Source of the DNA: Trichosphaerium sp. ATCC 40318
Taxonomy: Eukaryota; Protista; Tubulinea
Direction of reading: 5' to 3'
NCBI GenBank assembly: GCA_038496445.1
Contig: JALMLS010000174.1
Location: forward strand, 2,362 to 66,361
Length of the DNA stretch: 64,000 nucleotides
Both the position numbers and the translations under genes were made by a program. This document shows, piece after piece, positions 15,916-61,732 of this stretch. Within the stretch, counting starts at the first letter, position 1. Each line of letters opens with the position of its first letter. The notes under the pieces were generated by a model, which was given only the letters and a program-made list of their open reading frames with translations, did no database searches and was not told the DNA's origin.

Positions 15916-16039
15916 CAGTGGTAGAATTGGATAAAATATGCATGTTCTGAACATGCAATATGTGGAAGAGATGTTCCTTGAGTGGATAATCATGAGCATG
16001 CTAAAATGTGCTATTTGCCTTATGTTTAATTCCACCACT
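15916..16039. mobile_element. Decayed family-A TIR element
   Basis: Ends cagtggtagaattgga ... aattccaccacta are CpG-decayed versions of the family-A TIR. Confidence 0.55.
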
Positions 16040-16177: not shown

Positions 16178-16351
16178 CAGTAGTAAAATCAGGAGTACGG
16201 ATAATGTATGGGTAGAGTACGGGTCAACAATACGGAACCTGTACGGATTAAGTACAGGTCAAAAGTATGGGTCACGTACGGGTTTTGTACAGGTCAAAAG
16301 TACAGGTTCTGTACGGGTTTAGTACGGGTCAAAATTCCGATTCCAGTACTG
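16178..16351. mobile_element. Family-B non-autonomous TIR element (MITE) with GTACGGGT array
   Basis: TA|CAGTAGTAAAATCAGGA ... TCCGATTCCAGTACTG|TA. The interior is made of gtacgggt-type repeats. Confidence 0.85.
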
Positions 16352-16523
16352 TAGGCTTAACAAGGAAAAAAAAACAGAAGTGGCAGTTGAAAATAAGCTA
16401 AGGGTAAAGTATCAATGAAGGTGATATGATGAAGTTCAATCTGTTAGATTTAACAGCCAGTGGTGGCTTGGTCCAACAAAACATCTTGATTGCCTTGAAC
16501 ATCAACAACTTTCAAGTTGCCAA

Positions 16524-16640
16524 CAATAGTAAAATCAATGGTACAGATAATGGGTAAAAGTATGGGTCATGTACAGGTTTTGTATGGATCAAAAGTATTG
16601 AACCCATACAAGTTAAGTACAAGTCAAAATATGTGTCAGC
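16524..16640. mobile_element. Decayed family-B fragment
   Basis: caatagtaaaatc... followed by gtatgggt/gtacaggt units, which are CpG-mutated gtacgggt. Confidence 0.55.
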
Positions 16641-17062
16641 AGTTATAATTGTGTATGGCATGTTATAAGCACATGTATTTTGGTTGATTCTGCAGTAATT
16701 TGCCTTTATTCAGGAAAGTATAATTACCTATTTTTGTAAATTTTTCTTCATTTGGTATTGATTCAATTGAGAATTATCTATATTAAGCCAACAAAAATGT
16801 GTTGTTGGTGCAAAACATCACTTTATGTGGGTGGAATATCTTCATCAAAGAGGAAAGAATTTCTGCATTTTCATATTCATAATTGAGCTGTTCTGTATAG
16901 CTTTTTCTTTGTTGCTTGAATATTTGAGAGTGTTATCAGACCATCCATTCAGATTCAATGAGATGTATTTGATAAGCATATTGCCAATAGCTTTGGCATA
17001 ATTCCATTCAAAGAATAGACACTGAAGTGGATATTGGCTATCAGTATGTTGGACAAGGAGTA

Positions 17063-18175
17063 CAGTGGTGGAATCGGACAGAACGCAAATCACACGTTTT
17101 GGGCACGTTTTGGGCACGTTTATTTTCCACGCAAAAGACACGTTTTGGGCACGTTTTGGGCACGTTTTTTTTTCACGCAAAAGGCACGTTTCTCTTCCAC
17201 ATGCTGGCCACGCAAATCGCACGTTTTGGACACGTTTTGGGCACGTTTATTACCTACGTTTTGGGCACGTTTTAGGCACGTTTATTTTCCACGTTTTGGG
17301 CACGTTTTGGGCACGCATATTTGCCACGCATATCACACGTTTTGGGCACGCATAAAACACCACTTTATAGAGGAAAAGAAAATAACAGTTTATTACGATA
17401 CATAACACATAACGATTACAAAGAGGTTTGGTACAATTATTACAAACTTTACATAAAACTATCCCCACATAAACAATACCCAGTTTATATCAACCAACTT
17501 CATGTTTTTGCCATTTTACCTGCTTTTTTCGCCAATCCTGCCTTATCGTAAATACTTAAGCAAGAACTTACCTAATTAGGCAAAAAATCTCAAATCCAAT
17601 AATCGTCTTTAAAAAGGGGTTTAATGGAGTTATTGAGCCATAATATCCTTAATCTACCCTAAATATCTATTTTCTATCGTTTTTGCCTTAAAAAAGGGGC
17701 ACCGAACCCCAAACCACCACAAACCATGCATCGTACCTAATAGTGGGCCATACTTCGTTTTTTAAAGGATTCGTACTAGTAGACCTGAGTTATTCACGAA
17801 AAATAGGAAAATCAAGAAATTGTTGGTTTTTGGGTATTTTTAGATTTTTTCGCCTACTTTTAGAGCCATGCCAATACAAACCTAACTACTGCTTACTTGG
17901 GTGAAAATACATGTTTTATTGTTGACGATCGGAGGCGATCGGCTTTGGGGTGAGATGGTTGAGTTTTGAGTTTGTCAATTTTTTTATTTTGAATTTTTCT
18001 CCAAATTTCTATTAAGAACAAGACATGGTTAAAACACGCAAATGGCACGTTTTGGGCACGTTTATTGCAAATATACAACACGCAAATGACACGTTTTGGG
18101 CACGTTTTGGGCACGTTTATTTTCCACGCAAATGGCACGTTTTAAGCACGCGTATTTTGTCCGATTCCACCACTG
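17063..18175. mobile_element. Family-A non-autonomous TIR element (1113 bp) with CACGTTTTGGG subterminal arrays
   Basis: Perfect TIR CAGTGGTGGAATCGGACA / TGTCCGATTCCACCACTG. Flanks are TA and (a)TA. Arrays of the 11-mer cacgttttggg lie at both ends around an AT-rich non-coding core. Confidence 0.9.
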
Positions 18176-18294
18176 ATAGTTTGAGCATAAATCTTCAAAG
18201 AATATCACATGGTCTATTGATACCTCCAGAGTGTTGCCAGGTGACAGAGTGAATCCTAAGTATTTGTCAGAAAAGGATGAGGAAAGTGTCTGTT

Positions 18295-18469
18295 CAGTAG
18301 TAAAATCGGGAGTACGGATAATGTACAGGTAGAGTACAGGTCAAAAAATACAGATCCTGTACAGGTTTTGTACAGGTCGAAAGTACGGGTTACGTACGGG
18401 TTTAATCCGGGTCAAAAGTACGGAACCCGTACGGGTTGAGTACGGGTCAAAATCCCGATTCCAGTACTG
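18295..18469. mobile_element. Family-B MITE
   Basis: CAGTAGTAAAATCGGGAGTACGG ... CCCGATTCCAGTACTG, homologous to 16178..16351. Confidence 0.85.
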
Positions 18470-18498
18470 TTATAAGTTGTTAAAAAACAGGCCAGAGT

Positions 18499-18930
18499 AC
18501 ATATTTGCCACACATATCCAGTGGAATTGGACATGCAAACTGCAAGTTTTGGGCATGTTTTTTTCCCAAATAAAAAGCAAGTTTCTCTTCCACATGCTGG
18601 CCACACAAATAGCATGTTTTTGGCACACATATTTTGTCCAATTTCACCACTGTCCCATATTTTGGAAATGCATAAAACACTATGTTATAGAAAAAAAGCA
18701 AAACAATTTATTAAGAGTAAAAATGTGTTGTAATGTATTTGTAATGTTGTATATTTGCAATATGTGTGTCCAAAACATGTCATTTGTGTGGTTTAACCAT
18801 GTTCTGTCCTTAATAGAAATTTGGCCAAAAATTCAATAAAAAAAAATGGAAAACTCAAAACTCAACCATCTCACCTCAAAGCCAATTGCCTTTGATCACT
18901 GACAATAACATGTATTTTCACACAAGTAAG
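18499..18930. mobile_element. Old, CpG-decayed, rearranged family-A copy
   Basis: Matches parts of 17063..18175 with cacg->catg/caca changes (gggcatgtttt, ccacacaaatagcatg). Confidence 0.7.
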
Positions 18931-18969
18931 CACAGTAGTAAAATCAGGAGTACAGATAATGTACAGGTA

Positions 18970-19778
18970 CAGTGGTGGAATCAGACAAAATATGCATGCC
19001 TAAAAGGTGCCATTTGCGTGTTTTAACCATGGCTTGTCCTTAATAGAAATTTGGCCAAAAATTCAAAATAAAAATGGAAAACTCAAAACTCAACCATCTC
19101 TCACCCCAAAGCCGATCGCCTCCAATCTTTAACAATAAAACATGTATTTTCACCCAAGTAAGCAGTAGTTAGGTTTGTATCAGCATGGTTTTACAAGTAG
19201 GTGGAAAAATCTAAAAATACCCAAAAACCAACAATTTCTTGATTTTTCTATTTTTTGTGAATAACTCAGGTCTACTAGTATGAATCCTTTAAAAAACGAA
19301 GTATGGCCCAATATTAGGTATGATGCATGGTTTTGTGGTGGTTTGGGGTTTGGTGCCCCTTTTTAAGGCAAAAACAATAGAAAATAGGTATTTAGGGTAG
19401 TTTAAGGATATTATGGCTCAATAACTCCATTAAACCCCTTTTTAAAGACAATTATTGGATTTGAGATTTTTTGTCTAATTAGGTAAGTTCTTGCTTAAGT
19501 ATTTACAATAAGGCAGGATTGGCGAAAAAAGCAGGTAAAATGGCAAAAACATGAAGTCGGTTGATATAAACTGGGTATCATTTATGTGAGGATAGTTTTA
19601 TGTAAAGTTTGTAATAATTGTACCAAACCTCTTTGTGTATTGTAATAAATTGTTATTTTCTTTTCTTCTATAAAGTGGTGTTTTATGCATGTTCAAAACA
19701 TGCAATATGCTTGGCAAATATGCGTGCCCAAAACGTGCCCAAAATGTGCAATTTGAGTGTCGTCTGATTCCACCACTG
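18970..19778. mobile_element. Family-A copy in inverted orientation, inserted at a TA inside a family-B left end (18933-18969)
   Basis: Reverse complement of 17063..18175 with shortened arrays. TIRs are cagtggtggaatcagaca / gtctgattccaccactg. Confidence 0.9.
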
Positions 19779-19969
19779 AAAGGCCAGCCAATAAGTTGAT
19801 GCTACTGCACAATTAATGTGCCATCTTTGACTCATTTACACAAAAAAAATTTAGTAAATTGAAAAACTATAAAACACACCTTAGAACTTCTTTTATCTAA
19901 ATCAACACACATTTTATCATTAGCACCAATATCCACTGTTACTTTTGCTGCACATCCATTTGTATTATT

Positions 19970-21807
19970 TTGAACAAAACTTTCAAAGTAGAAAGAGGCA
20001 CTGGTCAAGGTAATCCCCTCTCTCCCACACTGTTCGCTATCATGTTAGAGCCGCTCAACAGAATGATTAATCAATGCAATGATGTCAAAGGTGCTCAAGC
20101 CATTTTTCTTCTCCTCAAACAAATCCTCTTTGCTGACGACGCATTGCTAACCTCCTCATCCTCCTCTGATATTACGCTTTGCCTAGATATGATTAACAAT
20201 TACTCTAAAGCATCTGGATTGTTCTTGAACAAAGCCAAATGCTTTCAAATTAACGTTGTCAAAGATATAGAACAAGTACTTCCCTCTGCTTCTATTACTA
20301 AATACTTAGGCTTTGATTTGTCACCAGGTACCTCTCTCACCTTCAACTTTCATAAGGCATTAGACGGTATCATCAAGTCTTTGAACTCATGGAAACCCTA
20401 TGCTAGAACTCTCAAGGCCAAGCACTCAATACTCAGGACGTATGCCCAATCACGTATCTTATATTTTGCTAGACCTCTGCAGATACCTTTGTGTATTGAT
20501 AAGCAATGGCGTAACATTGTCAACTGGTTCATGTTTTATGGCTATTATGACAGTGCTAACAATGTTTCCAAAGTCTACAATAACAACCACACTTATCGTT
20601 CTTCCTTAGGTTCTAGGACTGCTCTCCCTTTCCACTTGGGTGGGCTGTCTATCCCTGATATCTCCACCATAGCTGACAATTTTAAAGCTTCTCTTTGGTC
20701 TAGGCACCTCAACACAATCACACTGTATTCCGATCTCTGGGAATCTGGTCTTTCTGAAATAGGAAACTATTGTCATGACCAATGGCTCAAATTAGGTCGT
20801 GGTGTAAAAATTCCTCCTAATCAAACCTATGTCAAAGTCTCAGACATTGTCAAACATAATACCCCTGCTTCCAACCAGATTCACTGGCCACCTACTCTTC
20901 AAGCAATGATAGATCTAGGCTGGAAAGTTCATCTTATGCTCAAGTCTGTCAGTAAGCTTAGGGGAGTCAATAAACCTAGAGATATTCTTTGGAGATATCT
21001 GCTCAAGCTCCTTCCAGTCAAACATTCTGATGTTAAGTATCCACTACACTGTCATTGTTTATTTTTTGAATGGGAATATGCTAATGCTATAGGTAGTATG
21101 CTCATCAAACACATTTCACCCTTCTTATCCTCCTGGTCTTTTAACACTCTTAAACTAACCACTAACAAAGAAAAAGCCATTCACATCAGCTCCATCATGC
21201 ATTGCATTTGGAAGTGTCGCAACTCTCTTCTTCATGATGAAGCAACTCCAGTAGTTCACAAAGTTCTTTTCTGGCACCAACAAAATATTCTTGTTGCACT
21301 CAACATTGACAATTCACAGTGTGAAAATCCCCCAGATGAAGAAAAGTTCACTTATGTTGGCAATTTCTGGAAGTCCACGGGCTGGTTGGCAGATATCACC
21401 GATACCTGGGAAGATTGGGGTGCAGGCTTACCTCCTCCACCTGAACCTCCTCCTTTACCAACTACACCTTCTAAAAACACCTATACAGTAGTAAGTACGT
21501 GGCACGTACGTATATAGTACGTGTGAAAAGTACGTGCCACGTACGTATATTGTACGTGTGAAAAGTACGTGCCACGTACGTATATTGTACGTGTGAAAAG
21601 TACGTGCCACGTACGTATATTGTACGTGTGAAAAGTACGTGCCACGTACGTATATTGTACGTGTGAAAATCCCGATTTCACTACTGTATTAATTCAATTA
21701 CTAACCACTTAACCCCCATTATTAGGTATAAAAGGAAAAAACACAACTATTACTCAAACTATGAAAGTTCAGATGAATGGGATGATGATCCATACTTTGA
21801 TTTGTAA
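19970..21807 (+). pseudogene. Truncated LINE ORF2 (C-terminal half of the reverse transcriptase), interrupted by a MITE at 21486
   Basis: 515-aa ORF. Removing 21486..21686 plus one TA restores the frame to ...SSDEWDDDPYFDL* (stop at 21805-21807). Confidence 0.85.
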
Positions 21808-21900
21808 AAACCTAATGTAACCCAATTGCATGCGTGGTTATTGTCGTCCACAGCACAATAAACCCACCTTTTTTTTGAAAAAAAAAAAAAAAAAAAAAAA
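19973..21900 (+). mobile_element. 5'-truncated L1/Tx1-like non-LTR retrotransposon with poly(A) tail and 15-bp TSD
   Basis: RT motifs QGNPLSPTLF, FADD, SGLFLN..KC and KYLG. AATAAA at ~21857 and A23 at 21878-21900. Direct repeat ATTTGTATTATTTTG at 19958-19972 and 21900-21914. Confidence 0.93.
21486..21686. mobile_element. Family-C MITE with five 35-bp tandem repeats
   Basis: TA|CAGTAGTAA ... ATCCCGATTTCACTACTG|TA. The unit gtacgtgccacgtacgtatattgtacgtgtgaaaa is repeated ~5 times. Confidence 0.85.
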
Positions 21901-22123
21901 TTTGTATTATTTTGTCCAAGAGAGTAAAAAGACTGACATAGATCATATAACTTTTCCACATTACCAAGATGTTTTTTCTTTGTCACATACATGAATATCT
22001 TTAGGCCCTTTTATATCTGAAATGTTGCTGCAAAAATCTTTGTTGTAAGCCTAATATGTACATTAATATTATGATAACACAAAAAAAGTGATATGTAAAA
22101 TGTTTGAAAGGCTTACAATGTTA

Positions 22124-22390
22124 CAGTGGAATCAAACAGTGTGCAAATTGCATGTTTTGGACATGCATATTGCACATTTTGGGCATGCATAAAACACCAT
22201 TTTGTAGAGAAAAAAGAAAATAATGATTTATTACAATACATAACAAATCCAATAATCATCTTTAAAAAGGGATTTAATGGAGTTATTGAGCCATAATATC
22301 CTTAAACTACCCTAAATACCTATTTTCTATCATTTTTGCTTTAAAAAGACACCAAACCCAAACCACCATGAAACCATGCATTGTACCTAA
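22124..22390. mobile_element. Decayed family-A fragment
   Basis: Matches 17063-17740 with deletions and CpG loss (catgttttggacatgc). Confidence 0.7.
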
Positions 22391-22399
22391 ATATACATA

Positions 22400-23600
22400 A
22401 TGTTACATTTTCTGAGCAGTTCATACAGTTAGACCAAAGTTATGCAATAAAACAACAAAATTCAGCAAAAAGCTACACATACATTGTATGGGAAAAAGAG
22501 GTGTATACCTTGAGTGTATTTTCATTCCAACTATTAAGTGCAGAAATGTGCTCAATAAGCATATTGCCTACAGTGGTGGAATCGGACAGAACGTGAATCG
22601 CACGTTTTGGGCACGTTTATTGCAAATATACAACACGCAAATGGCACGTTTTGGGCACTTTTTGGGCACGTTTATTTTCCACGCAAATGGCACATTTTAA
22701 GCGTGCGTATTTTGTCCGATTCCACCACTGTACAGCTACCACATAATTCCATGAAGAAAAAACAATGATGCTGAAGTGGGTATTGTGAGTTTGAATGCTT
22801 AACAGGAAGTAGTTTTAGTAAAAAGCCATAAAATGTCACATGGCCTATTGATTTCCAAGAAAACTGACAGATTTCAACATTTTGTGGAGTTTCCATCCTT
22901 TATCTCTCAATGTGGGGGGGCCTTAAGTTGTCTATTCTCTGCCATGCTTTAAACTTGCCTCAGCTTGTTGTTAGTGACCTTCATGAATATTTGTAATCAT
23001 TGTTAAGAAGTACAATGGAATGTAGTTATTCAGTAAACTAGAATCATTTTTTTTGTATAGAAGGCAAATGATACCTCTACCAAACCACTTGTATCAATAA
23101 AAAGTGAAAACAAATGTCTAGTGATAGATGATCCAAGGTTTTTAAACAAACACATGCCCACACCATCTGGACCAAAAGCTTTGTTTGATGGCAAGGATTT
23201 GACAGCAGATAGTATTTTTTTTTTGTAATGGGCTTTGACTTACTGGCAAAAATATGTACTTTGCAATAAACCTTCCAATAGGACAGAAAATCTGACAAGT
23301 CTGGTGGGTGGTTAAGTGTCTAAGTTCCTTTATACTTTGTGAAGCTTGCTTGCCTTCAAGTACTTTGGTAATGTATGGTGAATGAGTTTTCTCATTGGTA
23401 CCACAAGAGATTTGGGAACACATGTATAAAAACTTGCATCTTTCTGCCATGAGTTTATTATACTTAACTTCTTCTGCCAACAAGATAATATCATCATTAA
23501 CAACCTTAAGAGTGTGTACTTCCTCCAAAAATTGTTGCACAAGTTAAAAAACAGGTTTTGATTGGCTTTAACATCTTTCAAGAGGGCGACTTTGAGTTTG
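22400..23600 (-). pseudogene. Decayed LINE remnant with RT domains 0-2 and a C-terminal fragment
   Basis: Frameshifted minus-strand peptides KPITK..ILSAVKSLPSNKAFGPDG, GIICLLYKKND..NNYIP..LLNNDYKI and LLKLLPVKHSNSQYPLQHHC..GNMLIEHIS. Confidence 0.8.
22571..22730. mobile_element. Family-A 160-bp deletion derivative
   Basis: TA|CAGTGGTGGAATCGGACA ... TGTCCGATTCCACCACTG|TA, sitting inside a LINE remnant. Confidence 0.9.
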
Positions 23601-26329: not shown

Positions 26330-29189
26330 TTAGGATTGTTTGGCAGGTTGTTTGAGATCTTTCATCAAGAGCATATTTTGACCTTCCTGAACGACGGTAC
26401 CCTCGGTTATATACACCTCGCTTACAGTAGCATCAGCAAAGCAGGATATCTTGGTTTCCATTTTCATACTCTCCATAACGAGGAGCGTATCGCCCTTTTT
26501 CACGGCATCTCCAGCAGCGACACATATCTTTACAATCTTGCCTGCCATTTCGGCCTTGTATAGGGCACCTTGCAGTTTTTGTGCAGCCTGTGGGCGACGC
26601 AATCGGGGCGCCTTTACAAAAGTGCGTACGCCAAACGCATGTGTGTGAACGTGAATCTTGCTCTTGGCTTGGTCAAAGCAGCATCGGTACTCTCTCCTCA
26701 ACTTGTTCACTATGCAACTCAAAGTAGCAGTAGATACACCTGGTGTGTGGCGCGCTTCTGACGTCATGCAGAGTGTCGCTTCTGTTGTGTGTTTCCCATC
26801 AATTGTTACAGTGAATGTTGGTACAGGCTTTTCCTGCAAAACACGGTATGCGATTGTGATTGGCTCATCAAGATAGGACACCGTCACGTGCTGATCCCTA
26901 CAATTACCCACATCAGTCAACATGCTAACTACTACATTGTAGAAAGTAACGGGGTCGATGTAATTACCTGTACTGCACATTTCTGAATCCTGAAGGAATG
27001 TTACGCCATAAATGTCTTTGTACATTTCTGAGGTGCCTTCGATGTTGTGGTTAGTTACACAGCGTTGTGTACTTGTAAATTGCTGGGCTTTTGAGCAACA
27101 AAATGGTAAGAAAGGAAATCGCACCAATCAAACATTACAGCAACTGTAGCCATGTCACAAAGACCTTGCAGTGGTAACGCATCGAAAGCAGCACGGGTGT
27201 CAGCGAGGAGTTGTGTGCCAATGAGATTTGTTTGATAATGGCCAGATAGGAAAGTAGGGTTTTCCAAGACCTAGTAGTAACAACTGTTTGAGTGCACGGT
27301 TGAAGCTTTTTGTTTTAAAACATACTTGTAGTAAAAAATTTGTATTTGTGCGAATGCCAATCGTCACATTGTGTTGGAGAGCACGTGTCATCTTCATTAT
27401 TGCTTCATCACGATTCTTGCCAAACGCAGTGATTTTGGCAACCATTGGATCATAATATATAGAGATATCCGAGCCTATATCATCCATCGCTTTAGCAACA
27501 GTTTTCCTAAAGTGCAAACAAAGAATCGTACCTGATGTTATACCAGAATCGTAGCGAATAGAGTCCATGTTCACAGGCTTCCAATCTAGAATCTTGCCTA
27601 CAGCAGGTGCGAAGTTGTTTGTAGGATCTTCGGCGTATATACGACATTCTATAGCGTGACCAGCACTTCAATAGTCATTAATATAGGACATTGGTTTGGG
27701 GTGGAAATTTGGAATTTAGAATTAAACACATAATTAAAAGACAAAGAGTTCGATGACTAACCTTGTAATGGCGCTTTGTGTCAATCCCAATTGCTTTAAA
27801 GAAATGCCAGACGCGACTTTTATTTGTATTTCGACCAAATCCAAGCCGGTTATTGCCTCAGTGATAGGATGCTCGACTTGTAGCCGTGTGTTTACTTCCA
27901 AAAAGTAATAATTCTTGTGTTCGTCCACAATCCACTCTACAGTACCAGCGTTTCGGTAATTGATCGCGCGGGCAATAGCGACTGATGATTCACCCATGCG
28001 CTGGCGCAAATCCTATGCCAATATTTAGCATATAACAAAAAGCCCAAAAATAAAATCACAACTGGTATAATGGGTCATACCTCATCCACAAAGACACTTG
28101 GTGTTTCCTCTATAACCTTTTGATGACGCCTTTGTACTGAGCAATCGCGCTCGAACAGGTGCACGGTATCACCTGATGTGAGTGTCAATGGGAATATAGT
28201 TTGTAAAGGCGTACCATATTCGTCAGCCATGATCTGGAACTCAATGTGCTTGACCAATGTAAAGTACTTTTCTAAAAGCACCTTCTCATCTCCAAAAGCT
28301 TCTCGCGCCTCCCTTTGTGCGCCTTCTATTTCGCTACGCAAGTCTTGATCCTTCCATACAACACGCATACCTATGCATTACCAATAAATATCAAATCATT
28401 TTTTTTGTGATCGGGACCCAAATTGTGACAGCTGACGTCTTGGCTGTACAAATGAGACAACGTACCCTTGCCACCACCGCCTGCAGACGCTTTAATGAGT
28501 ACTGGATAACCAATCTTCTTGGCTTCTGCTATAAGGGTGGTCATATCCTGCTTGTCACCGTTGTAACTGTATAGTGTGAGTGCGCGGTTAAATTGTAATT
28601 TGTTGCTTGGTTGTGTGGAAATGTCAAACGTTGCGCAAAACTGTTCTTACCCTGGAATCACAGGAATCTTGTTACTGTACGTCGATGACGTCAGTAGGTT
28701 CTTTGCAGCAATTTTGGAACCCATTGCCGCAATACTGGATGAACGTGGGCCGATAAATATTATGCCGTTGTTTTCACAAGCTTTAGCAAAGGACTCGTTT
28801 TCGGCCAAAAAGCCGTACCCTGTCATAAATGGTTGGGAACGTTTTGAATACCAAAAACTTTTGGTTTGTAACTAGTTTATGCTTTTACGCACCAGGGTGA
28901 AGAGCATCGGCGCCAGTGCGCTTCGCTGCTTCTATTATTTTATCTTGGCGTAAGTACGACTCTAGAGATGGCGCTGGCCCAAGCAAAATCGCCTCATCAG
29001 CGTATTTAACAAATGGGGCATGTTCGTCTGCTGTGGAAAATACAGCTAAACGATTTGCGTTAAAATGTCGCTAATACACCATATATACGTACCAACCGTA
29101 GCAATACCAAGCTTTTTACATGTACGCATAACACGAAGGGCTATTTCGCCTCTATTCGCTACTAAAACCTTGGCTATCCGCTTTTGCAT
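26330..29189 (-). CDS. Biotin-dependent acyl-CoA carboxylase alpha subunit (MCC/PCC/GCC-alpha type; BC + BCCP)
   Basis: [64 protein letters not shown] and biotinyl motif ESMKME. Confidence 0.92.
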
Positions 29190-44731: not shown

Positions 44732-47700
44732 ATGGTTATTGCGGGTACGAATATAGTACTAACTCCGTTCACTCCTTATATTGCCCAGAAACACTACAAA
44801 ACAGCCTCTACAACATCTTCAAAAACTAAAGGAAACCAAACACATTCAAAAATATACGACAATCGTGTCACACTCATAAACTATGAGGCATACAGACAGT
44901 TGTGTTTCGGGGTAGATGATTTGAAAATATTCGACTTATTGGGTATTCCAGTGTGGGTAATGGACACAGAAAATTGGTGCTACATTTGGTACTACAATCT
45001 AGTGCACCTCGACGTAGTTTGATTGACCTCCTGAAATAGGGGCAACACAACAGCTCTGCGCCTTTGGAAAGTCACCAACATGCGCAGCGTTGATATATCA
45101 GAAGCATCCGAGCAATTCCGAAAGATACCACGAGGTCTTCTCGCTAAGGTAAAAAACAATTTATACCTTTCACAACGCACAACTCGTAAAAAGTTTTTCG
45201 CCCTTTTGTTGTTTTTTTTCCAAATTTCTGACTTTGCAACGAAATGCTGTATTGCGATCATTTCTTTCACAACAGTTTTGGTACGCAATAGTTAAACCGT
45301 TTAGTGGATTAAAGGCGAAAAAGCGGATTTTACATTTCGTCTGAGGACCTTGTATCCTGGAGGGGTTGCCACTACCTTGTACATGACTTCCGGACCAATG
45401 CAGATGCGGCTCAAAGGTGAAAAGGAGAGCAGGACAGTGTTACTGGCTCATGGCGCAATTATGGGTAATATCAGCATTCAACTTTGTATTACCCTTTTCT
45501 ATTGCTCACTGTTGCATATAGGTGACGCCTATTCTACAGAGAGGCGTGCTATAGAGGCATTGCGGTATATTAGCGACAAGATGGCGTTGTACACGCCAGA
45601 TGGTCAAACAGTGTTGATGCAAAATAACGCTTGTAACACACTCTCCGACGTTAAAGACGGCCAATTGGACATATTGAGACACTTTGGTGGTCGTATAAAT
45701 GTGGTTGAAAGCTTAATAACATCATTCAAACAGGTGCGCTATTTTTTGAGTTGTTCTATTTCTGGGATGAGAAAACGTCCTAAAATGGAGTAATAGGCCA
45801 AACTTGGAACAACCAAAACTTTTAAATTCGAGAACAGCAAAAACTGTTGGAGAAAAGTTAAAGTAACATACATTCGCGATCCAGTCAACTCAAAAAAGGC
45901 AATTCTCGTACAAGAGGAGGACATATCCGAGTTGGAAATGGAAAAACAACGTCTAATAAAAACTGAAGAGACGTACAGTTCCAAGACGCGGATGTTCGCT
46001 TGCATGTCACATGAAGTCAGGACGCCACTGCACGCCATACAAAGTGCCTTATCTGTACTTGACACCAACGATTTTAACACGGAACAACGCAGTTCTTTGG
46101 TACGATGGCAATGACATGACCTTGATTGGTTCATTAAAAAAAACCTCACAGCAACTTGTACTGATTCTGCCTTTAGGAATCTATTCAACGGTGTTCAAAA
46201 TTGTTACTACATATTATTCAAGATGTACTGGACGTGAGTGCAATTGAAACAGGCGGGTTTTCAACAACTATGATGCCTTTTAATGTGGTAGACATGGTAA
46301 GCTTATAATTGCCGATCACGTGTTTTGTTTTATACTTATACTTGGTGTCTAAAATAGGTCAAAGACTCAGTCAACATTACGGCTAACAGGATAGGTTCCA
46401 AGCCGTTAGAGCTCAGCGCTTACTTCCATCCTGGTCTTGAGTCCAACCCATTCGCAAAAGGAGATGCCAACAGACTGCTTCAAGTGATTACTAACTTACT
46501 GAACAACGCCATAAAGTTTACAAATCAAGGTCATATCCTGGTCACAGCAAAGTTACATCATGGCACGAAACAAAGTAAACTAGTCATAAGCGTACAAGAT
46601 ACCGGCTCTGGTATTTCTCAAGTAAACGTTGAGCGTTTATTCGTGCCGTTTTGGCAAGACGAAGCGACAGCACGGAAAAAAAGAGATGGCGCAGGTACGT
46701 TACTTTAACAAAGAAAATTCTTCTGACTATCCATATCACCTTCTTCACTAACACTTGTGGCCATGTAGGACTAGGATTGTATATATGTAAAAAGATAATA
46801 GATAATATAAACGGCGATATCAGTGTCACCAGCGAAATTGGTAAAGGAACTACTTTCGTGGTGTCAGTAATGCTCGATACACTCCCGAACGCAGAAAGGT
46901 ACGTACATCGGTTCGTTGTACCATATCAATAATACCACTACTAGACTTGTTCATACAGTGAGCAACGCCAGCACGTGGTTCCGTAAAAAACACGTGATGC
47001 TAGCTTCTAAAGGTAGTGTGCTCCAGTTGACCTGTGGCAAATACGTTGAGGCATGGGGGAGTAACACAACGAATGTAATCGATTTTGAGGCGCTAAAAAC
47101 CGCTCTAAAGGGTTCTAAAGACGCCATTATATTGATGGATGAGCCCTTCTTAGTTCAAGAAATGAGTGACGCGCATATGAAAGAGCTTAAAGATGTGTCA
47201 CTCCATGCTCTTTGTATTACAAATAATCAACCAGCAGTGCTAGAAGCAATGCAAAAAACACTAAACGAGCCTCACCACATGATTCACTTTCGTACTTGGC
47301 CTATGACAAGGCTATCGCTGTACAGAATTTTTACACAAGCAGTGCCAAAAGCATCGACAGAGCCTGTAAATCAAGCGCCATCAAAGTACAAAACTATAAG
47401 AGATTTACGGATTTTGGTAGTGGATGACGACGCTCTTGTCCGCATGACTACTCTGCGTGCCCTAAAAAAGTGTGGTTGCACGCATGTTGATGAAGCACGA
47501 AGTGGAAAGGAAGCATATAATACATACTTGCAAGCGAAATCGGCGCACCATGTGATTTTAACAGATTGCTACATGGAGGATGGAACCGGTTTTTGGCTTG
47601 CAAAACAGATCAGGCAACATTGTGGTTCTCTAACACAACCTGTAATCATAGCTGCGAGTGGCATGAGCCCAGACACTGCAAAGAAGAGTGATGGATTCAA

Positions 47701-47773
47701 TGATGCGTTGAGGAAACCTTTCACTTTTGAAAAACTGTTTGAAGTAATTGAACGAAATTCTCGAGTTACATAA
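44732..47773 (+). CDS. Hybrid sensor histidine kinase (PAS-like sensor, HisKA, HATPase, pseudo-receiver, receiver)
   Basis: H-box [10 protein letters not shown]-box [11 protein letters not shown]1 DTGSGI, G2 GLGLYIC. Receiver ILVVDDD..LTDCYM..KPF. Start codon uncertain (44672 or 44732). Confidence 0.9.
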
Positions 47774-48012: not shown

Positions 48013-51000
48013 ATGGATGCGCTCTTGGTAGTACGGACTATCGAAGAAAGGCCCAGCGTAGAGAGCTACGAAGATTTGATAGCTGTTCTACGACAAGACG
48101 CTATAGACCGAAAGACCCGTACACAGACTACATTATCTACAACGCTTCAACAAGCGGTTGGTCGCATAGCCAAAGCAATTATACGCGATTTAAAATCCAA
48201 AAAAAAAGATACAGAAGAATTAAGGTTCGTAGTACACTCACAGCTTGTGACTGCATCTGTGTAAAAAGCCGTTGATTTTTTGAATTTATGTGACTCTACA
48301 AATACGTCACAACGCCACCAAAGCCATATTTACATTACAAACTCGCGTCAATTCTCTTAGTAATACGTTTTAGATTACAAAATGTCTTACTTTCTCTTGG
48401 CTACCTATTAAACGCATCAGCACTTGCCTCAGGCATACCAGGTACGCCCCAAAAAACTCGTGGTAACCGCTAAATATTTTTTGTTTAAAAAGCCAACCAG
48501 AAAAAGGATCTACTGCTTGCAATATGCGAAGTGGCCTCACGACCCGAGTTACGCAAGGTACAGTAACGTGTATTGACAAGAGGGAAAAACTGAGAAAGAA
48601 AACAGCCAATAGCCCCTTAACCCATCAGGAATCATATTTATTGGTTGTAGGGAAGCGTCAATTATTGTATATGGTGCATCTCAGTGCAGAACTTTCCAGG
48701 CAGTACCGTTAGTCAATGCGTAAAACAGCTCATCGACATCTTGTTCGAGGTTCTAACCAAGTTCGTTGATTCGGCTACCGTACAACGGGAAGCTTTTTCG
48801 GTGCGTCACACGGTTTTTTTTTTATATCTAGATTTATTTGAGTTTGAATGTTTCTTTTCGTTTTGGTGATGGTTTGTGTCGTAGGCTCTTCGTAAATTGG
48901 TGACTCAATGTGCAGAGGCGATGAAAGGCATATATGACAAATGGTTACCTCTATTTTGGACCAGACTATATCACGAGGTGAGGTTACGTCATTTGTGGCT
49001 CAATGTTACCTTTTATTTTTTATTATTTTTATATACTGCCATCTGACTGCCAAGTTGTTTATTTACTTTTCTTTACTTTACTCTATTGTGTTCTGACAGC
49101 CAAGTTTTTAGTCTGCAAAAGTTCGTAATGCTGCACTGGAAGGATTGAAATGTGCTATGCCTCTTTTTGAGCCAGTCCCAAAAGAGCTATCCATTCTGTT
49201 GTTTAAAGACATGACATGTGAGGGAGGCATCATAGATGGGCTTCATCGATTCATTGCAGCTGGGCAAGGTAAAAACATTGTAAGTTGGCATTTCCTCGTA
49301 TTTAATGAGTGTGCAGGTGAACATATTGTGGGTACATGGGGACCACTCATTGTCCTTTTGGGAGAATGTATATTTAAAGATAAAATTATAAACAAGCTAT
49401 TAAAGCTGCCAGAGAAGCTATTTATACACCCAGATGCTACTGTTCGCGTTTCTGCTTTTCATGAGTGGCAGTCACTCATTAAAAACTTTTCGTTGGTGCA
49501 TAAAGTCCCAATGGCGGAGCACGTGCGTGGTAGGATGCAAGTACAACTTCTTGTAAAGCCCATTCTGAATAGGTACGCACAAGAGTCAAATTTAGAATGC
49601 ATTTTTCATGACAATGTGTCCATGCTTACTTTTTTGTGTAGTTTTCAAAAGGACAGTTCCACTGTGCTAAAAAATGCGGCGAGAAGATGTTGGAGTTACC
49701 TCGTTTCTAATGTAGGACCACAAGCATTTGAAGTGTGGCCACATCTCGTTGAATCTGTTACAGTGCGTTTTTCTTTTTTTTTTTTTGGATTCATATACCA
49801 TCTTTTGTTTTCAGTTTTTTTTTCGATTCCTAAATCAGCTTTATCGCCTACACTTCTCCTATCTATTAAAAAACCCCACTGCACTCGCTATGTTTTAATT
49901 CTATCTTTGTGAGGTGAAAAGGAGAAACGAATAGACATAATTCTCTTTTTCTTTTTTTGGTTGATCAAAAATGTGAATGGAGTGTCAAAGTACACTCACT
50001 ACATACTAACCGCAATATAGGCGCAATTAATACAAAAATCGGACGTTGACATTCTAGCAAATGTGGTAACGTATTTGGCAAAGTTGATGCAAGTGCAGCG
50101 TGGCGAAGATGCTGCCAACACGTGCGCAACGGTTTTTTTAACACCAGAAAAGAAAAAGAATGTCACCCGCTCTTTCTCACTTTGCTCTTCTGTAGACGCG
50201 AAATCGATGGTAATTGTTTTCCTGTGTATGATTTAACGTTCCCTCCATCTTTTCTACTGAATTCGTGGGGTTGGGTAAAGTCTGTGATTACATTTAGCTT
50301 CACGATACCTGATCAAGGTCCAACTACTTCTATTTTCCAAGCGGCACTCCTCCTCTGGCGCGTCTATCTAAGTCGCATAGAGAACAATCCAGGTTAGCGA
50401 TTATCTCCAAACCCCTTTCATTTCCGCCACACCACGTGCCAGTACTCACATTAAATCTCAGGACCGGATATCGCAAAGCTGAACGAAGTTTTACTGTCCA
50501 TCACATTGTTCACAGAGGACTTTCTTACTTCACAATCAGAGGGCATTCGACGCGGCTCATTCATACTAGATACCCTGGTCGATGCCATGCCAACACAAAT
50601 TGGTGTACGAAAGCCAATGACAGCTCTTAAAGTGAAAGAGGCCTCAGCGTCTTCAGTACTAGCAAAAGGCTTGCCGCCAGCTGGTACGACACCTCATCTA
50701 GTCAAAATGCAATCTTCTTCTTTATTGACGTTCTTGTTTTACCTTGTAGAGTTCTTGATGTATCACTGGATGAAAGCTGCACTCAAAGTGCCTATCATAT
50801 CGACGCCTCAGAAAGGCACATTTTTAAAGACTGTGATGCACGTCTTCAGCGGTCTGTTTTCTCCTTCCGGCAATCCTTCAAACCCATTCCCATTTTCCTA
50901 TCCTGCATCCGTAATGACAACCCTCATGGCCACGTGTATTTCAGTACGTATCAGCACTATCTCTTGGTAGCAGCACGCACAGTATGGGCATGCATGGCTG

Positions 51001-60829: not shown

Positions 60830-61732
60830 ATGCATCTCCCGGCGGAACTACACAAGGAAATAGTGCATTTAGACCCCAAATCGTTTATTTCATGGCCACT
60901 GCTCTCTAAACAAACTGCTAGAATGCGATTTAACGACTCGTTAAGAAAACATGGCATTTGGCAGGCGTACAGTCTAAAACAAGGGATTTATATTCTCAAA
61001 AAGAAACAGACTTTCAAAAACGGAAAAAAGGAAGGAGAATGTTTGTGCTTCTATGAAGAACCAGGGCAACTTCACTCCAAGTCTCGGTATGTCAACGATA
61101 AACTTCATGGAGAGTACAACGAGTGGTATGAGGATGGTAAATTACTAGCACAGGCAAGTTACGTTAAAGGTAAACACGAGGGTGAGTGTAAGTCTTGGCA
61201 TGATAATGGTAAATTATCAATGTGCTGCGATTATGTCAACGGTAAACTAGAAGGAGAGTTCAAGACTTTTTATTTTGATGGTCCAATCTTTGAGCTATGT
61301 ATTCTTGTCAATGGTATACAAGAGGGTGTTTGTAAGTCGTGGCATGCAAACGGTGAATTAATGGAGGAGTTCAATTATGTCAATGATGAACGAGAAGGAG
61401 AGTGTAAATCATGGCGTGAGAATGGTAATATTTGGGAACAGTATAATTATGTCAATGGTAAACGACATGGAGAATACAAGTTATGGCACGATGATAATCA
61501 GTTGCAGGAACAAGGTAGTTATGTCAACGGTAAAAGAGACGGAGAATACAAAATATGGCATTATACAGGTCAAATCTGGCAACAAGGAATGTATGTCAAT
61601 GGTAAACATGAAGGAGAGTTTAAGGAGTGGTATATGAATGGCACATTGTGTAGGCAATGTAATTATGTTAATGATAAAATAGAAGGAGAATGTACGAGGT
61701 GGAGTGATAATGGTCAATTAATGCCACCTTAA
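60830..61732 (+). CDS. Intronless F-box-like + MORN-variant repeat protein
   Basis: N-terminus MHLPAELHKEIVHLDP..WPLLSK, followed by ~10 tandem 24-aa repeats YVNGKxEGEyKxWyxNGxL. Confidence 0.85.
   Translation: MHLPAELHKEIVHLDPKSFISWPLLSKQTARMRFNDSLRKHGIWQAYSLKQGIYILKKKQTFKNGKKEGECLCFYEEPGQLHSKSRYVNDKLHGEYNEWYEDGKLLAQASYVKGKHEGECKSWHDNGKLSMCCDYVNGKLEGEFKTFYFDGPIFELCILVNGIQEGVCKSWHANGELMEEFNYVNDEREGECKSWRENGNIWEQYNYVNGKRHGEYKLWHDDNQLQEQGSYVNGKRDGEYKIWHYTGQIWQQGMYVNGKHEGEFKEWYMNGTLCRQCNYVNDKIEGECTRWSDNGQLMPP

Follow-up and report, generated by a model that had tools for sequence, protein, structure and literature searches.

Which transposon moves a set of short elements that share one terminus but carry different CpG-dense arrays behind it? 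The question is raised by a stretch of 64,000 nucleotides from Trichosphaerium sp. ATCC 40318 (GCA_038496445.1, contig JALMLS010000174.1, positions 2,362 to 66,361 of the forward strand), hereafter the window, where a nest of repeats occupies 15.9-23.9 kb in gene-bearing surroundings of about 40% G+C. A first reading, made from the letters of the window alone (the sequence-only reading), had distinguished three families of such elements, A, B and C, and saw in them TA-inserting relatives of Tc1/mariner/pogo transposons, with modular cassettes mobilised by a single transposase lineage. The analysis was extended to an assembly of 70.3 Mb in 642 contigs (G000; C-numbers designate its contigs, the window being contig C245, and L-numbers the loci extracted from them), while the published assembly of Trichosphaerium sp. 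is described as having 70.8 Mb, 37.7% G+C and 8.7 introns per gene (PMC10980511). The answer is that all three families are new and non-autonomous, and that they belong to a group of transposons with CAG ends and a 2-bp target duplication. Quite probably, they are deletion derivatives of large cut-and-paste transposons ending in CAG...CTG, which their ends and duplication place most likely in the CACTA/EnSpm-Mirage-Chapaev-Transib-Plavaka (CMCT) group, as a divergent branch.

The six elements of the sequence-only reading were all found again with the same limits and ends. They are listed here together with the long interspersed nuclear element (LINE) that hosts one of them:

16178..16351, plus strand: family B miniature element, 174 bp, consisting of two ends and an array only, with the duplication TA on both sides.
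17063..18175, plus strand: mid-size element of family A, non-autonomous, 1,113 bp, with perfect 17-nt ends.
18295..18469, plus strand: family B miniature element, 175 bp, with B ends and the duplication TT.
18970..19778, minus strand: family A copy, 809 bp, older and reversed, with one mismatch in each end.
19970..21900, plus strand: 3' part of a LINE-type retroelement (reverse transcriptase end; RVT_1, E 8.7e-14), with poly(A) at 21878-21900.
21486..21686, plus strand: family C miniature element, 201 bp, with the duplication TA and empty-site paralogues.
22571..22730, plus strand: family A miniature element, 160 bp, with perfect ends and the duplication TA.

The perfect 17-nt inverted ends of family A start with CAGTGGTGGAATCGG; allowing three mismatches at most, the window contains nine instances of this end, where 0.04 would be expected. 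Family B ends in CAGTAGTAAAATCGG on the left and CAGTACTGGAATCGG on the right, and family C combines a B-like left end with CAGTAGTGAAATCGG on the right. A core, CAGT-N2-T-N2-AATCGG, is common to the ends of the three families, and its third base is G in all of them, so that the elements run from CAG to CTG. The left end of the C element at 21486..21686 is without the AATCGG block, kept in other C copies. Copies are dispersed over the 70.3 Mb: the shared-end pattern matched 123 times, the A end with at most one mismatch 96 times and the B/C ends 89 times, against zero matches for the controls (a reversed pattern for the shared end). In family A the ends make up about 45-50 pairs, and a similar number of pairs belongs to B and C together; they are often clustered and nested. 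Family A copies typically measure 1.07-1.11 kb, larger relatives of B 1.2-1.3 kb and larger relatives of C 2.0-2.2 kb, short copies ranging genome-wide from 80 bp to 2.2 kb. In size, ends, duplication and absence of open reading frames (ORFs), the copies of 80-280 bp resemble MITEs (miniature transposable elements with inverted repeats); this description sits less well with the many copies of 0.8-2.2 kb and with such a modest number of end pairs per group. Mid-size copies of A, B and C have no protein-family match, and their long open frames come from reading through the arrays. That we deal with related mobile elements, with a common terminus and different subterminal arrays, is supported.

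The next question is what insertion does to its target. Ends were paired automatically over all extracted loci and their flanks compared with 5,000 shuffles: identical 2-bp flanks were found for 24 of 35 automatically paired ends (shuffle mean 5.2, maximum 12). A curated set of 28 clean-ended insertions displays TA (8 cases), AA (4), AT (4), CA (3), TG (2) and TT (2), with AG, AC, GT, CT and GA once each; there is a mild bias in favour of T or A first, A second and C immediately upstream. Flanking by TA, as first described, thus holds for most copies of the window, but not genome-wide, where TA accounts for only 8 of the 28 clean insertions. When one copy of the 2 bp was removed and the joined flanks were used to search for uninterrupted paralogues, empty sites were recovered for seven insertions, AT, TG, AC, GT and AA being among the duplications concerned. 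All seven aligned gap-free across the junction, which fixes the length of the duplication at exactly 2 bp. A B element inserted into an A element, with an AT duplication, has an empty site that is 100% identical to positions 17340-17396 of the window; a C element inserted into a LINE, with TG duplicated, has its counterpart in positions 20764-20847. The C element and the 160-bp A element of the window, both with TA, have empty sites as well: the LINE at 19970..21900 is the host sequence of the former, uninterrupted paralogues in L029 and L026 spanning the insertion point with 95-98% identity, and the empty sites of the latter are in L029 and L053. Two window copies depart from this neat pattern. 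The A element at 17063..18175 is preceded by TA and followed by aTA, with one additional base at the right junction, and the A copy at 18970..19778 lies between TA and AA, leaving no clean duplication. Clean duplications are present in copies of just 80-139 bp, which implies that very little array is required for movement. Insertion duplicates exactly 2 bp of almost any sequence.

Several elements of the window lie within copies of one LINE family (19970-21900, 16700-17060, 22400-22570 and 22731-22900), whose uninterrupted paralogues are the source of the empty sites. The flanks of the A elements at 17063 and at 22571 are homologous stretches of this same repeat.

Where, then, are the coding elements? 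Two pairs of A ends with wide spacing pointed to loci L054, on C86, and L055, on C108, 99.5% identical across 8 kb from the A end onward, the C108 locus being a left half doubled as a mirror image. The A parent, C86:239207-251639, is 12,433 bp long, with the A-left end at 239207 and, at 251614-251639, an A-right end that matches exactly, over 26 nt, that of the window A copies, including the 160-bp element, which joins about 50 bp of left end to about 110 bp of right end. The first 292 bp of the mid-size window copy (17063-17354) are collinear with this parent (88.7%), and motifs occupy identical positions in both (31, 42, 53, 77, 88, 99, 123, 158 and 169); the arrays are therefore the parents' own subterminal regions. 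The minus strand of the A parent carries two spliced genes: gene 2 spans about 0.6-3.1 kb, gene 1 about 3.3-5.7 kb. A tandem array of 2.8 kb, rich in ACGAT (L054:5917-8707, that is C86:244916-247706, with periods of 18, 23, 38 and 78 bp), sits between gene 1 and a divergently oriented zinc-finger ORF. The latter opens a plus-strand gene starting at C86:248260, with a first ORF of 206 aa that has a C2H2-like finger, and the region C86:248878-251300 of this gene is the presumed candidate for the transposase.

Family B has a parent of its own, with a B-left end at C49:306113. Homologues of the A-parent genes follow at matching distances from this end: a gene-2 exon at 2.2 kb with 31% identity, two gene-1 exons at 3.3-4.2 kb with 59% and 47%, and, at 7.7 kb vs 9.05 kb, the zinc-finger ORF with 42%. 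Since each has its parent, with homologous but 31-59% identical genes, A and B descend from separate large sister elements, and the view that one transposase lineage mobilises modular cassettes has to be modified. Weaker paralogues of gene 1 occur on at least eight other contigs and hint at additional lineages. End pairs with long spacing on C515, C630 and C253 were also considered as parents and rejected, as they enclose host genes between two elements or belong to palindromic contigs. Mirror-image doublings that start at these elements or include them were seen in L055 (C108:9959-25821), L003 (C253), L051 (C630) and C515:5299-17647; such doublings might be genuine foldback rearrangements at the ends of transposons, or artefacts of the assembly.

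To which superfamily do such parents belong? Members of the CMCT group have 5'-CA..TG-3' ends and duplications of 2-5 bp (PMC12730594), and 2-bp duplications are known within it for Mirage, PlavakaA and some CACTA elements (PMC12730594, PMC6004678). The CAG...CTG ends and the exact 2-bp duplication found here fall within this range. Further likenesses are the large elements with several genes, accessory or cargo genes among them, and the short non-autonomous derivatives, while the differences lie in the CAG...CTG ends as compared with CAC...GTG, in an amoebozoan-like host, and in parents that the Transposase_21 and Plavaka models of Pfam miss. As for the proteins, each exon of the A parent was searched separately, and searches of the genome with protein families score exon by exon, which in a genome so rich in introns makes these family searches weak and insensitive. 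The A-parent exons tested had no significant Pfam match. In a collection of 1.84 billion representative proteins, a conserved 160-aa exon of gene 1 had 0 matches at E<=0.001; there was none in PDB either, and no usable match in the protein atlas. An exact-product look-up of the zinc-finger ORF found it not on record; in the protein atlas its neighbours were C2H2 clusters (0.91) and, as a weak lead, a Plavaka transposase cluster (0.87).

The arrays, called with Tandem Repeats Finder, tell how these lineages differ. Family A has 11-bp CACGTTTTGGG units arranged in higher-order units of 35 and 46 bp, the 46-bp variant being spaced 11, 11 and 24. Family B has a 35-bp unit of the GTACGGGT type, and family C a 35-bp GTACGT unit (5.1 copies, 98% matches). 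The ACG-centred arrays do differ in sequence, as the sequence-only reading had it, but they are not unrelated cassettes: all three display three ACG-centred sites per 35-bp unit, spaced 11, 11 and 13 bp, and are diverged versions of one design. In the C element at 21486..21686, for instance, 15 GTACGT sites follow each other with the spacing 11-11-13, and the B element at 16178..16351 has GTAYRGG sites spaced by 11 or 13 bp, nine forward and one reverse. The earlier observation that the A arrays run in a single direction rather than being inverted is borne out: the element at 17063..18175 has CACGTTT 21 times forward, 15 of these motifs on its left and six on its right, and never reverse. A long B copy (L023) has 23 sites forward and five reverse. 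With sites oriented one way, an element's left and right ends do not mirror each other past the first 15-18 bases. Behind the arrays, an interior module of 160 bp is common to the mid-size copies of A, B and C, and B and C share 657 bp. There was thus some truth in calling the cassettes modular, because ends and interiors have been recombined, but the arrays themselves came with the parents.

Age has left a conspicuous mark on these sites. At 58 ancestral CpG sites, copies of family A have 9-74% of the CpGs changed to TG or CA, while other positions diverge by 0.8-4%. The element at 17063..18175 retains 52 of the 58, whereas the older copy at 18970..19778, which covers 30 of them, retains 7, with 20 changed to TG/CA and 3 changed otherwise; this copy still aligns to the former through inverted matches of 538 and 119 nt. 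The CpG decay suggests that family A elements are probably methylated at CpG in the germ line. A corollary is that a high density of CpG in an array marks youth, not selection. Remnants of several ages complete the nest:

15916..16039, no strand assigned: old CpG-depleted A-type miniature copy, 124 bp, whose left end is an A end with three mismatches and whose right end is a decayed TTAATTCCACCACT.
16527..16640 (approximate bounds), plus strand: left portion of an older, decayed B copy, with the B left end and array in which CG became TG or CA, recognised by an inverted match.
18520..18652, no strand assigned: old CpG-depleted A-type miniature copy, whose right end is an A end with two mismatches.
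18933..18969, plus strand: left-end fragment of a B copy, 37 bp, with one mismatch to the B left end.
22125..22400 (approximate bounds), plus strand: old A fragment with no CpG remaining, recognised by a 116-nt inverted match.

These old remnants have CATG or CAAG in place of the CACG of young copies, and the array at 18520..18652 reads CATGTTTT or CAAGTTTT where CACGTTTT is expected. Of the eight ancestral CpG sites covered by the fragment at 22125..22400, seven are now TG/CA and one has changed otherwise, in a sequence with a non-CpG divergence of 21%. The B fragment at 18933..18969 is truncated at the start of the next A copy, with the junction GGTA|CAGTGG. Around the nest, host-gene exons (46916-47773, 49145-49912, 26330-27127 and 60830-61732) code for a response-regulator receiver domain, a Rif1 N-terminal domain, a biotin/lipoyl domain and part of a MORN-variant repeat gene.

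A scenario accounting for these features may be proposed. The transposase would recognise and cut the shared 15-base end, CAGT-N2-T-N2-AATCGG, and the family-specific phased arrays would be docking sites for a DNA-binding protein encoded by the element, aligned on one face of the helix at a spacing of about one turn. That the arrays are platforms for protein binding, one of the roles first imagined for them, is plausible by analogy, and those of family A are at any rate sites of CpG decay. Gene 2 is a candidate for this protein, being the most diverged between A and B. Arrays and binding protein would then diverge together from lineage to lineage while the cleavage end stays constant, and CpG methylation by the host would block the array sites, silence old copies and subsequently mutate the sites away.

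Maize En/Spm, a CACTA element, provides a close parallel: it combines short inverted ends with subterminal arrays of a 12-bp motif bound by TnpA, and methylation controls its activity. The elements described here likewise have a short conserved end followed, on both sides, by 200-400 bp of reiterated CpG-containing motifs, more than one element-encoded protein, and derivatives that, like dSpm, retain ends only. They differ from En/Spm in motifs that are unidirectional and phased 11-11-13 in 35-bp units, and in a duplication of 2 bp instead of 3 bp. Ac/Ds, of the hAT superfamily, has subterminal AAACGG repeats which its transposase binds in a methylation-sensitive manner. Here too, there are CAG ends and short CpG-containing motifs reiterated beside them, which in Ac/Ds are docking sites for the transposase. 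Membership in hAT is nevertheless contradicted by the 2-bp duplication, that of hAT being 8 bp, together with a genome search for the dimerisation domain: its 22 matches (PF05699) are all outside the parents, none being on C86 or C49.

Several points weigh against the scheme of large CMCT parents and their deletion derivatives, and they have to be balanced against the above. Assignment to the group is founded on ends and duplication; genome searches for Transposase_21, Plavaka, KDZ and DUF4218, insensitive as they are when scored per exon, retrieved nothing at C86 or C49. CAC...GTG ends have been called invariable for MITEs of the CACTA/Mirage/Chapaev set (PMC6004678), and A, B and C, which end in CAG...CTG, do not have these strict ends. 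The first 9.8 kb of the A parent lack the non-coding interior shared by the mid-size copies (160-657 bp), so that the history of these copies must include recombination of ends and interiors, beyond deletion. No coding parent was found for family C, which shares a B-type left end and the 657-bp interior with B. As for the arrays, the binding of a protein is inferred purely by analogy, the motifs of En/Spm have mixed orientation, unlike the unidirectional ones seen here, and CpG decay was measured in family A only.

What else could these elements be? They might belong to a lineage standing outside the named superfamilies, with an enzyme and accessory proteins that have no detectable relatives, and with ends and duplication resembling those of CMCT through convergence. 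The orphan 160-aa exon, without a counterpart in any of the three collections searched, goes in this direction, as do the tested exons devoid of significant Pfam matches and the fact that no searched transposase family matches the parents. We consider this unlikely, however, as the gene that contains the orphan exon is an accessory one and not that of the transposase, and both ends and duplication are within the published range of CMCT. An equally small chance goes to a bolder version: an undescribed deep branch, defined by CAG ends, by a 2-bp duplication independent of sequence and by three genes, among them orphans without relatives in 1.8 billion proteins, within which sister lineages would keep the cleavage end and 'speciate' through co-divergence of gene 2, as a fast-evolving accessory DNA-binding protein, and of its helically phased, methylation-sensitive 35-bp CpG arrays. 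Were this the case, cross-mobilisation would be limited and activity would be tied to host methylation.

The assignment first proposed, to MITEs of the Tc1/mariner/pogo type inserting at TA and moved by a Tc1- or pogo-like transposase resident in the genome, fares considerably worse and now looks very improbable. To be sure, a CAGT start is also that of Tc1, Tc3 and pogo, and small gene-less copies with CAGT-type ends and a 2-bp duplication are what Stowaway, or the Submariner elements of amoeba and pandoravirus, look like. TA is the commonest duplication and predominates in the window, and Tc1-like (DDE_3) and pogo-like (DDE_1) genes do exist in the genome. Yet 20 of the 28 duplications are not TA, in agreement with the empty sites, the parents are at least 12 kb long with three unrelated spliced genes, and no enzyme of this type is associated with them: the 27 DDE_3 and DDE_1 matches of the genome are all outside C86:239207-251639 and the vicinity of C49:306113, and the genome search gave no match for a mariner-type transposase. 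Nor do the resident elements have the right ends to act as the autonomous DDE partner that had been expected. The seven DDE_3 matches, rejected as partners, include two Tc1-like families of 3.2 and 3.4 kb that end in TA+TTGTCCG or TA+TTGTGCG, with TA duplications, and the DDE_1 loci were rejected because they end in TTAGT.

These residents have a life of their own. The two Tc1-like families are young (L056:2277-5485 and L057:2270-5477 for one; L058:2224-5639, L059 and L061 for the other), with copies at least 99% identical; the first has inverted repeats of about 200 bp, and a long B copy (L028) is inserted into one of its members. The pogo-like elements, of about 2 kb, have inverted ends of 51-54 bp (L018:757-807 and 2675-2725; L019:749-802 and 2676-2729), each of which contains two direct copies of a motif of about 19 bp, of the GTGTCCCAAAA type.

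Membership in the PIF/Harbinger-ISL2EU group deserves hardly any credence: ISL2EU also duplicates 2 bp, but this is AT within A|AT|T, with GG ends (PMC4482050), whereas here the ends are CAG and the duplication is variable (AT in 4 of 28), and the ten DDE_Tnp_4 loci of the genome have other inverted repeats, which disqualifies them as partners, none of them lying in C86 or C49. A Harbinger-like piece was met in one A-type copy of 3.2 kb (L047:4318-7493, that is C14:258817-261992), where a DDE_Tnp_4 gene fragment of about 1.35 kb follows the left array. This fragment has no inverted repeats of its own and an intact relative (L046:1868-4417) has different inverted ends, of 119 bp; it is therefore read as a passenger, which could result either from gene-fragment capture or from a nested insertion followed by deletion.

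We are thus brought back to large CAG...CTG-ended parents, most likely of the CMCT group, and to their short derivatives. As far as the evidence goes, nothing indicates a new mechanism of transposition. There is a lesson in the way the locus first appeared, since CAGT ends and TA flanks in one window are insufficient for a Tc1/mariner call. In an amoebozoan-like genome that has received little study, the short repeat families are now linked to large parents that carry genes. Two points seem worth pursuing: the common 35-bp phasing of three arrays that differ in sequence, and the sister parents with their diverged accessory genes. Lineages that share the same cleavage end, but differ in equally phased arrays and in accessory proteins, amount to a natural experiment, where it becomes testable how transposon lineages acquire recognition sites of their own and how these are eroded by CpG methylation.

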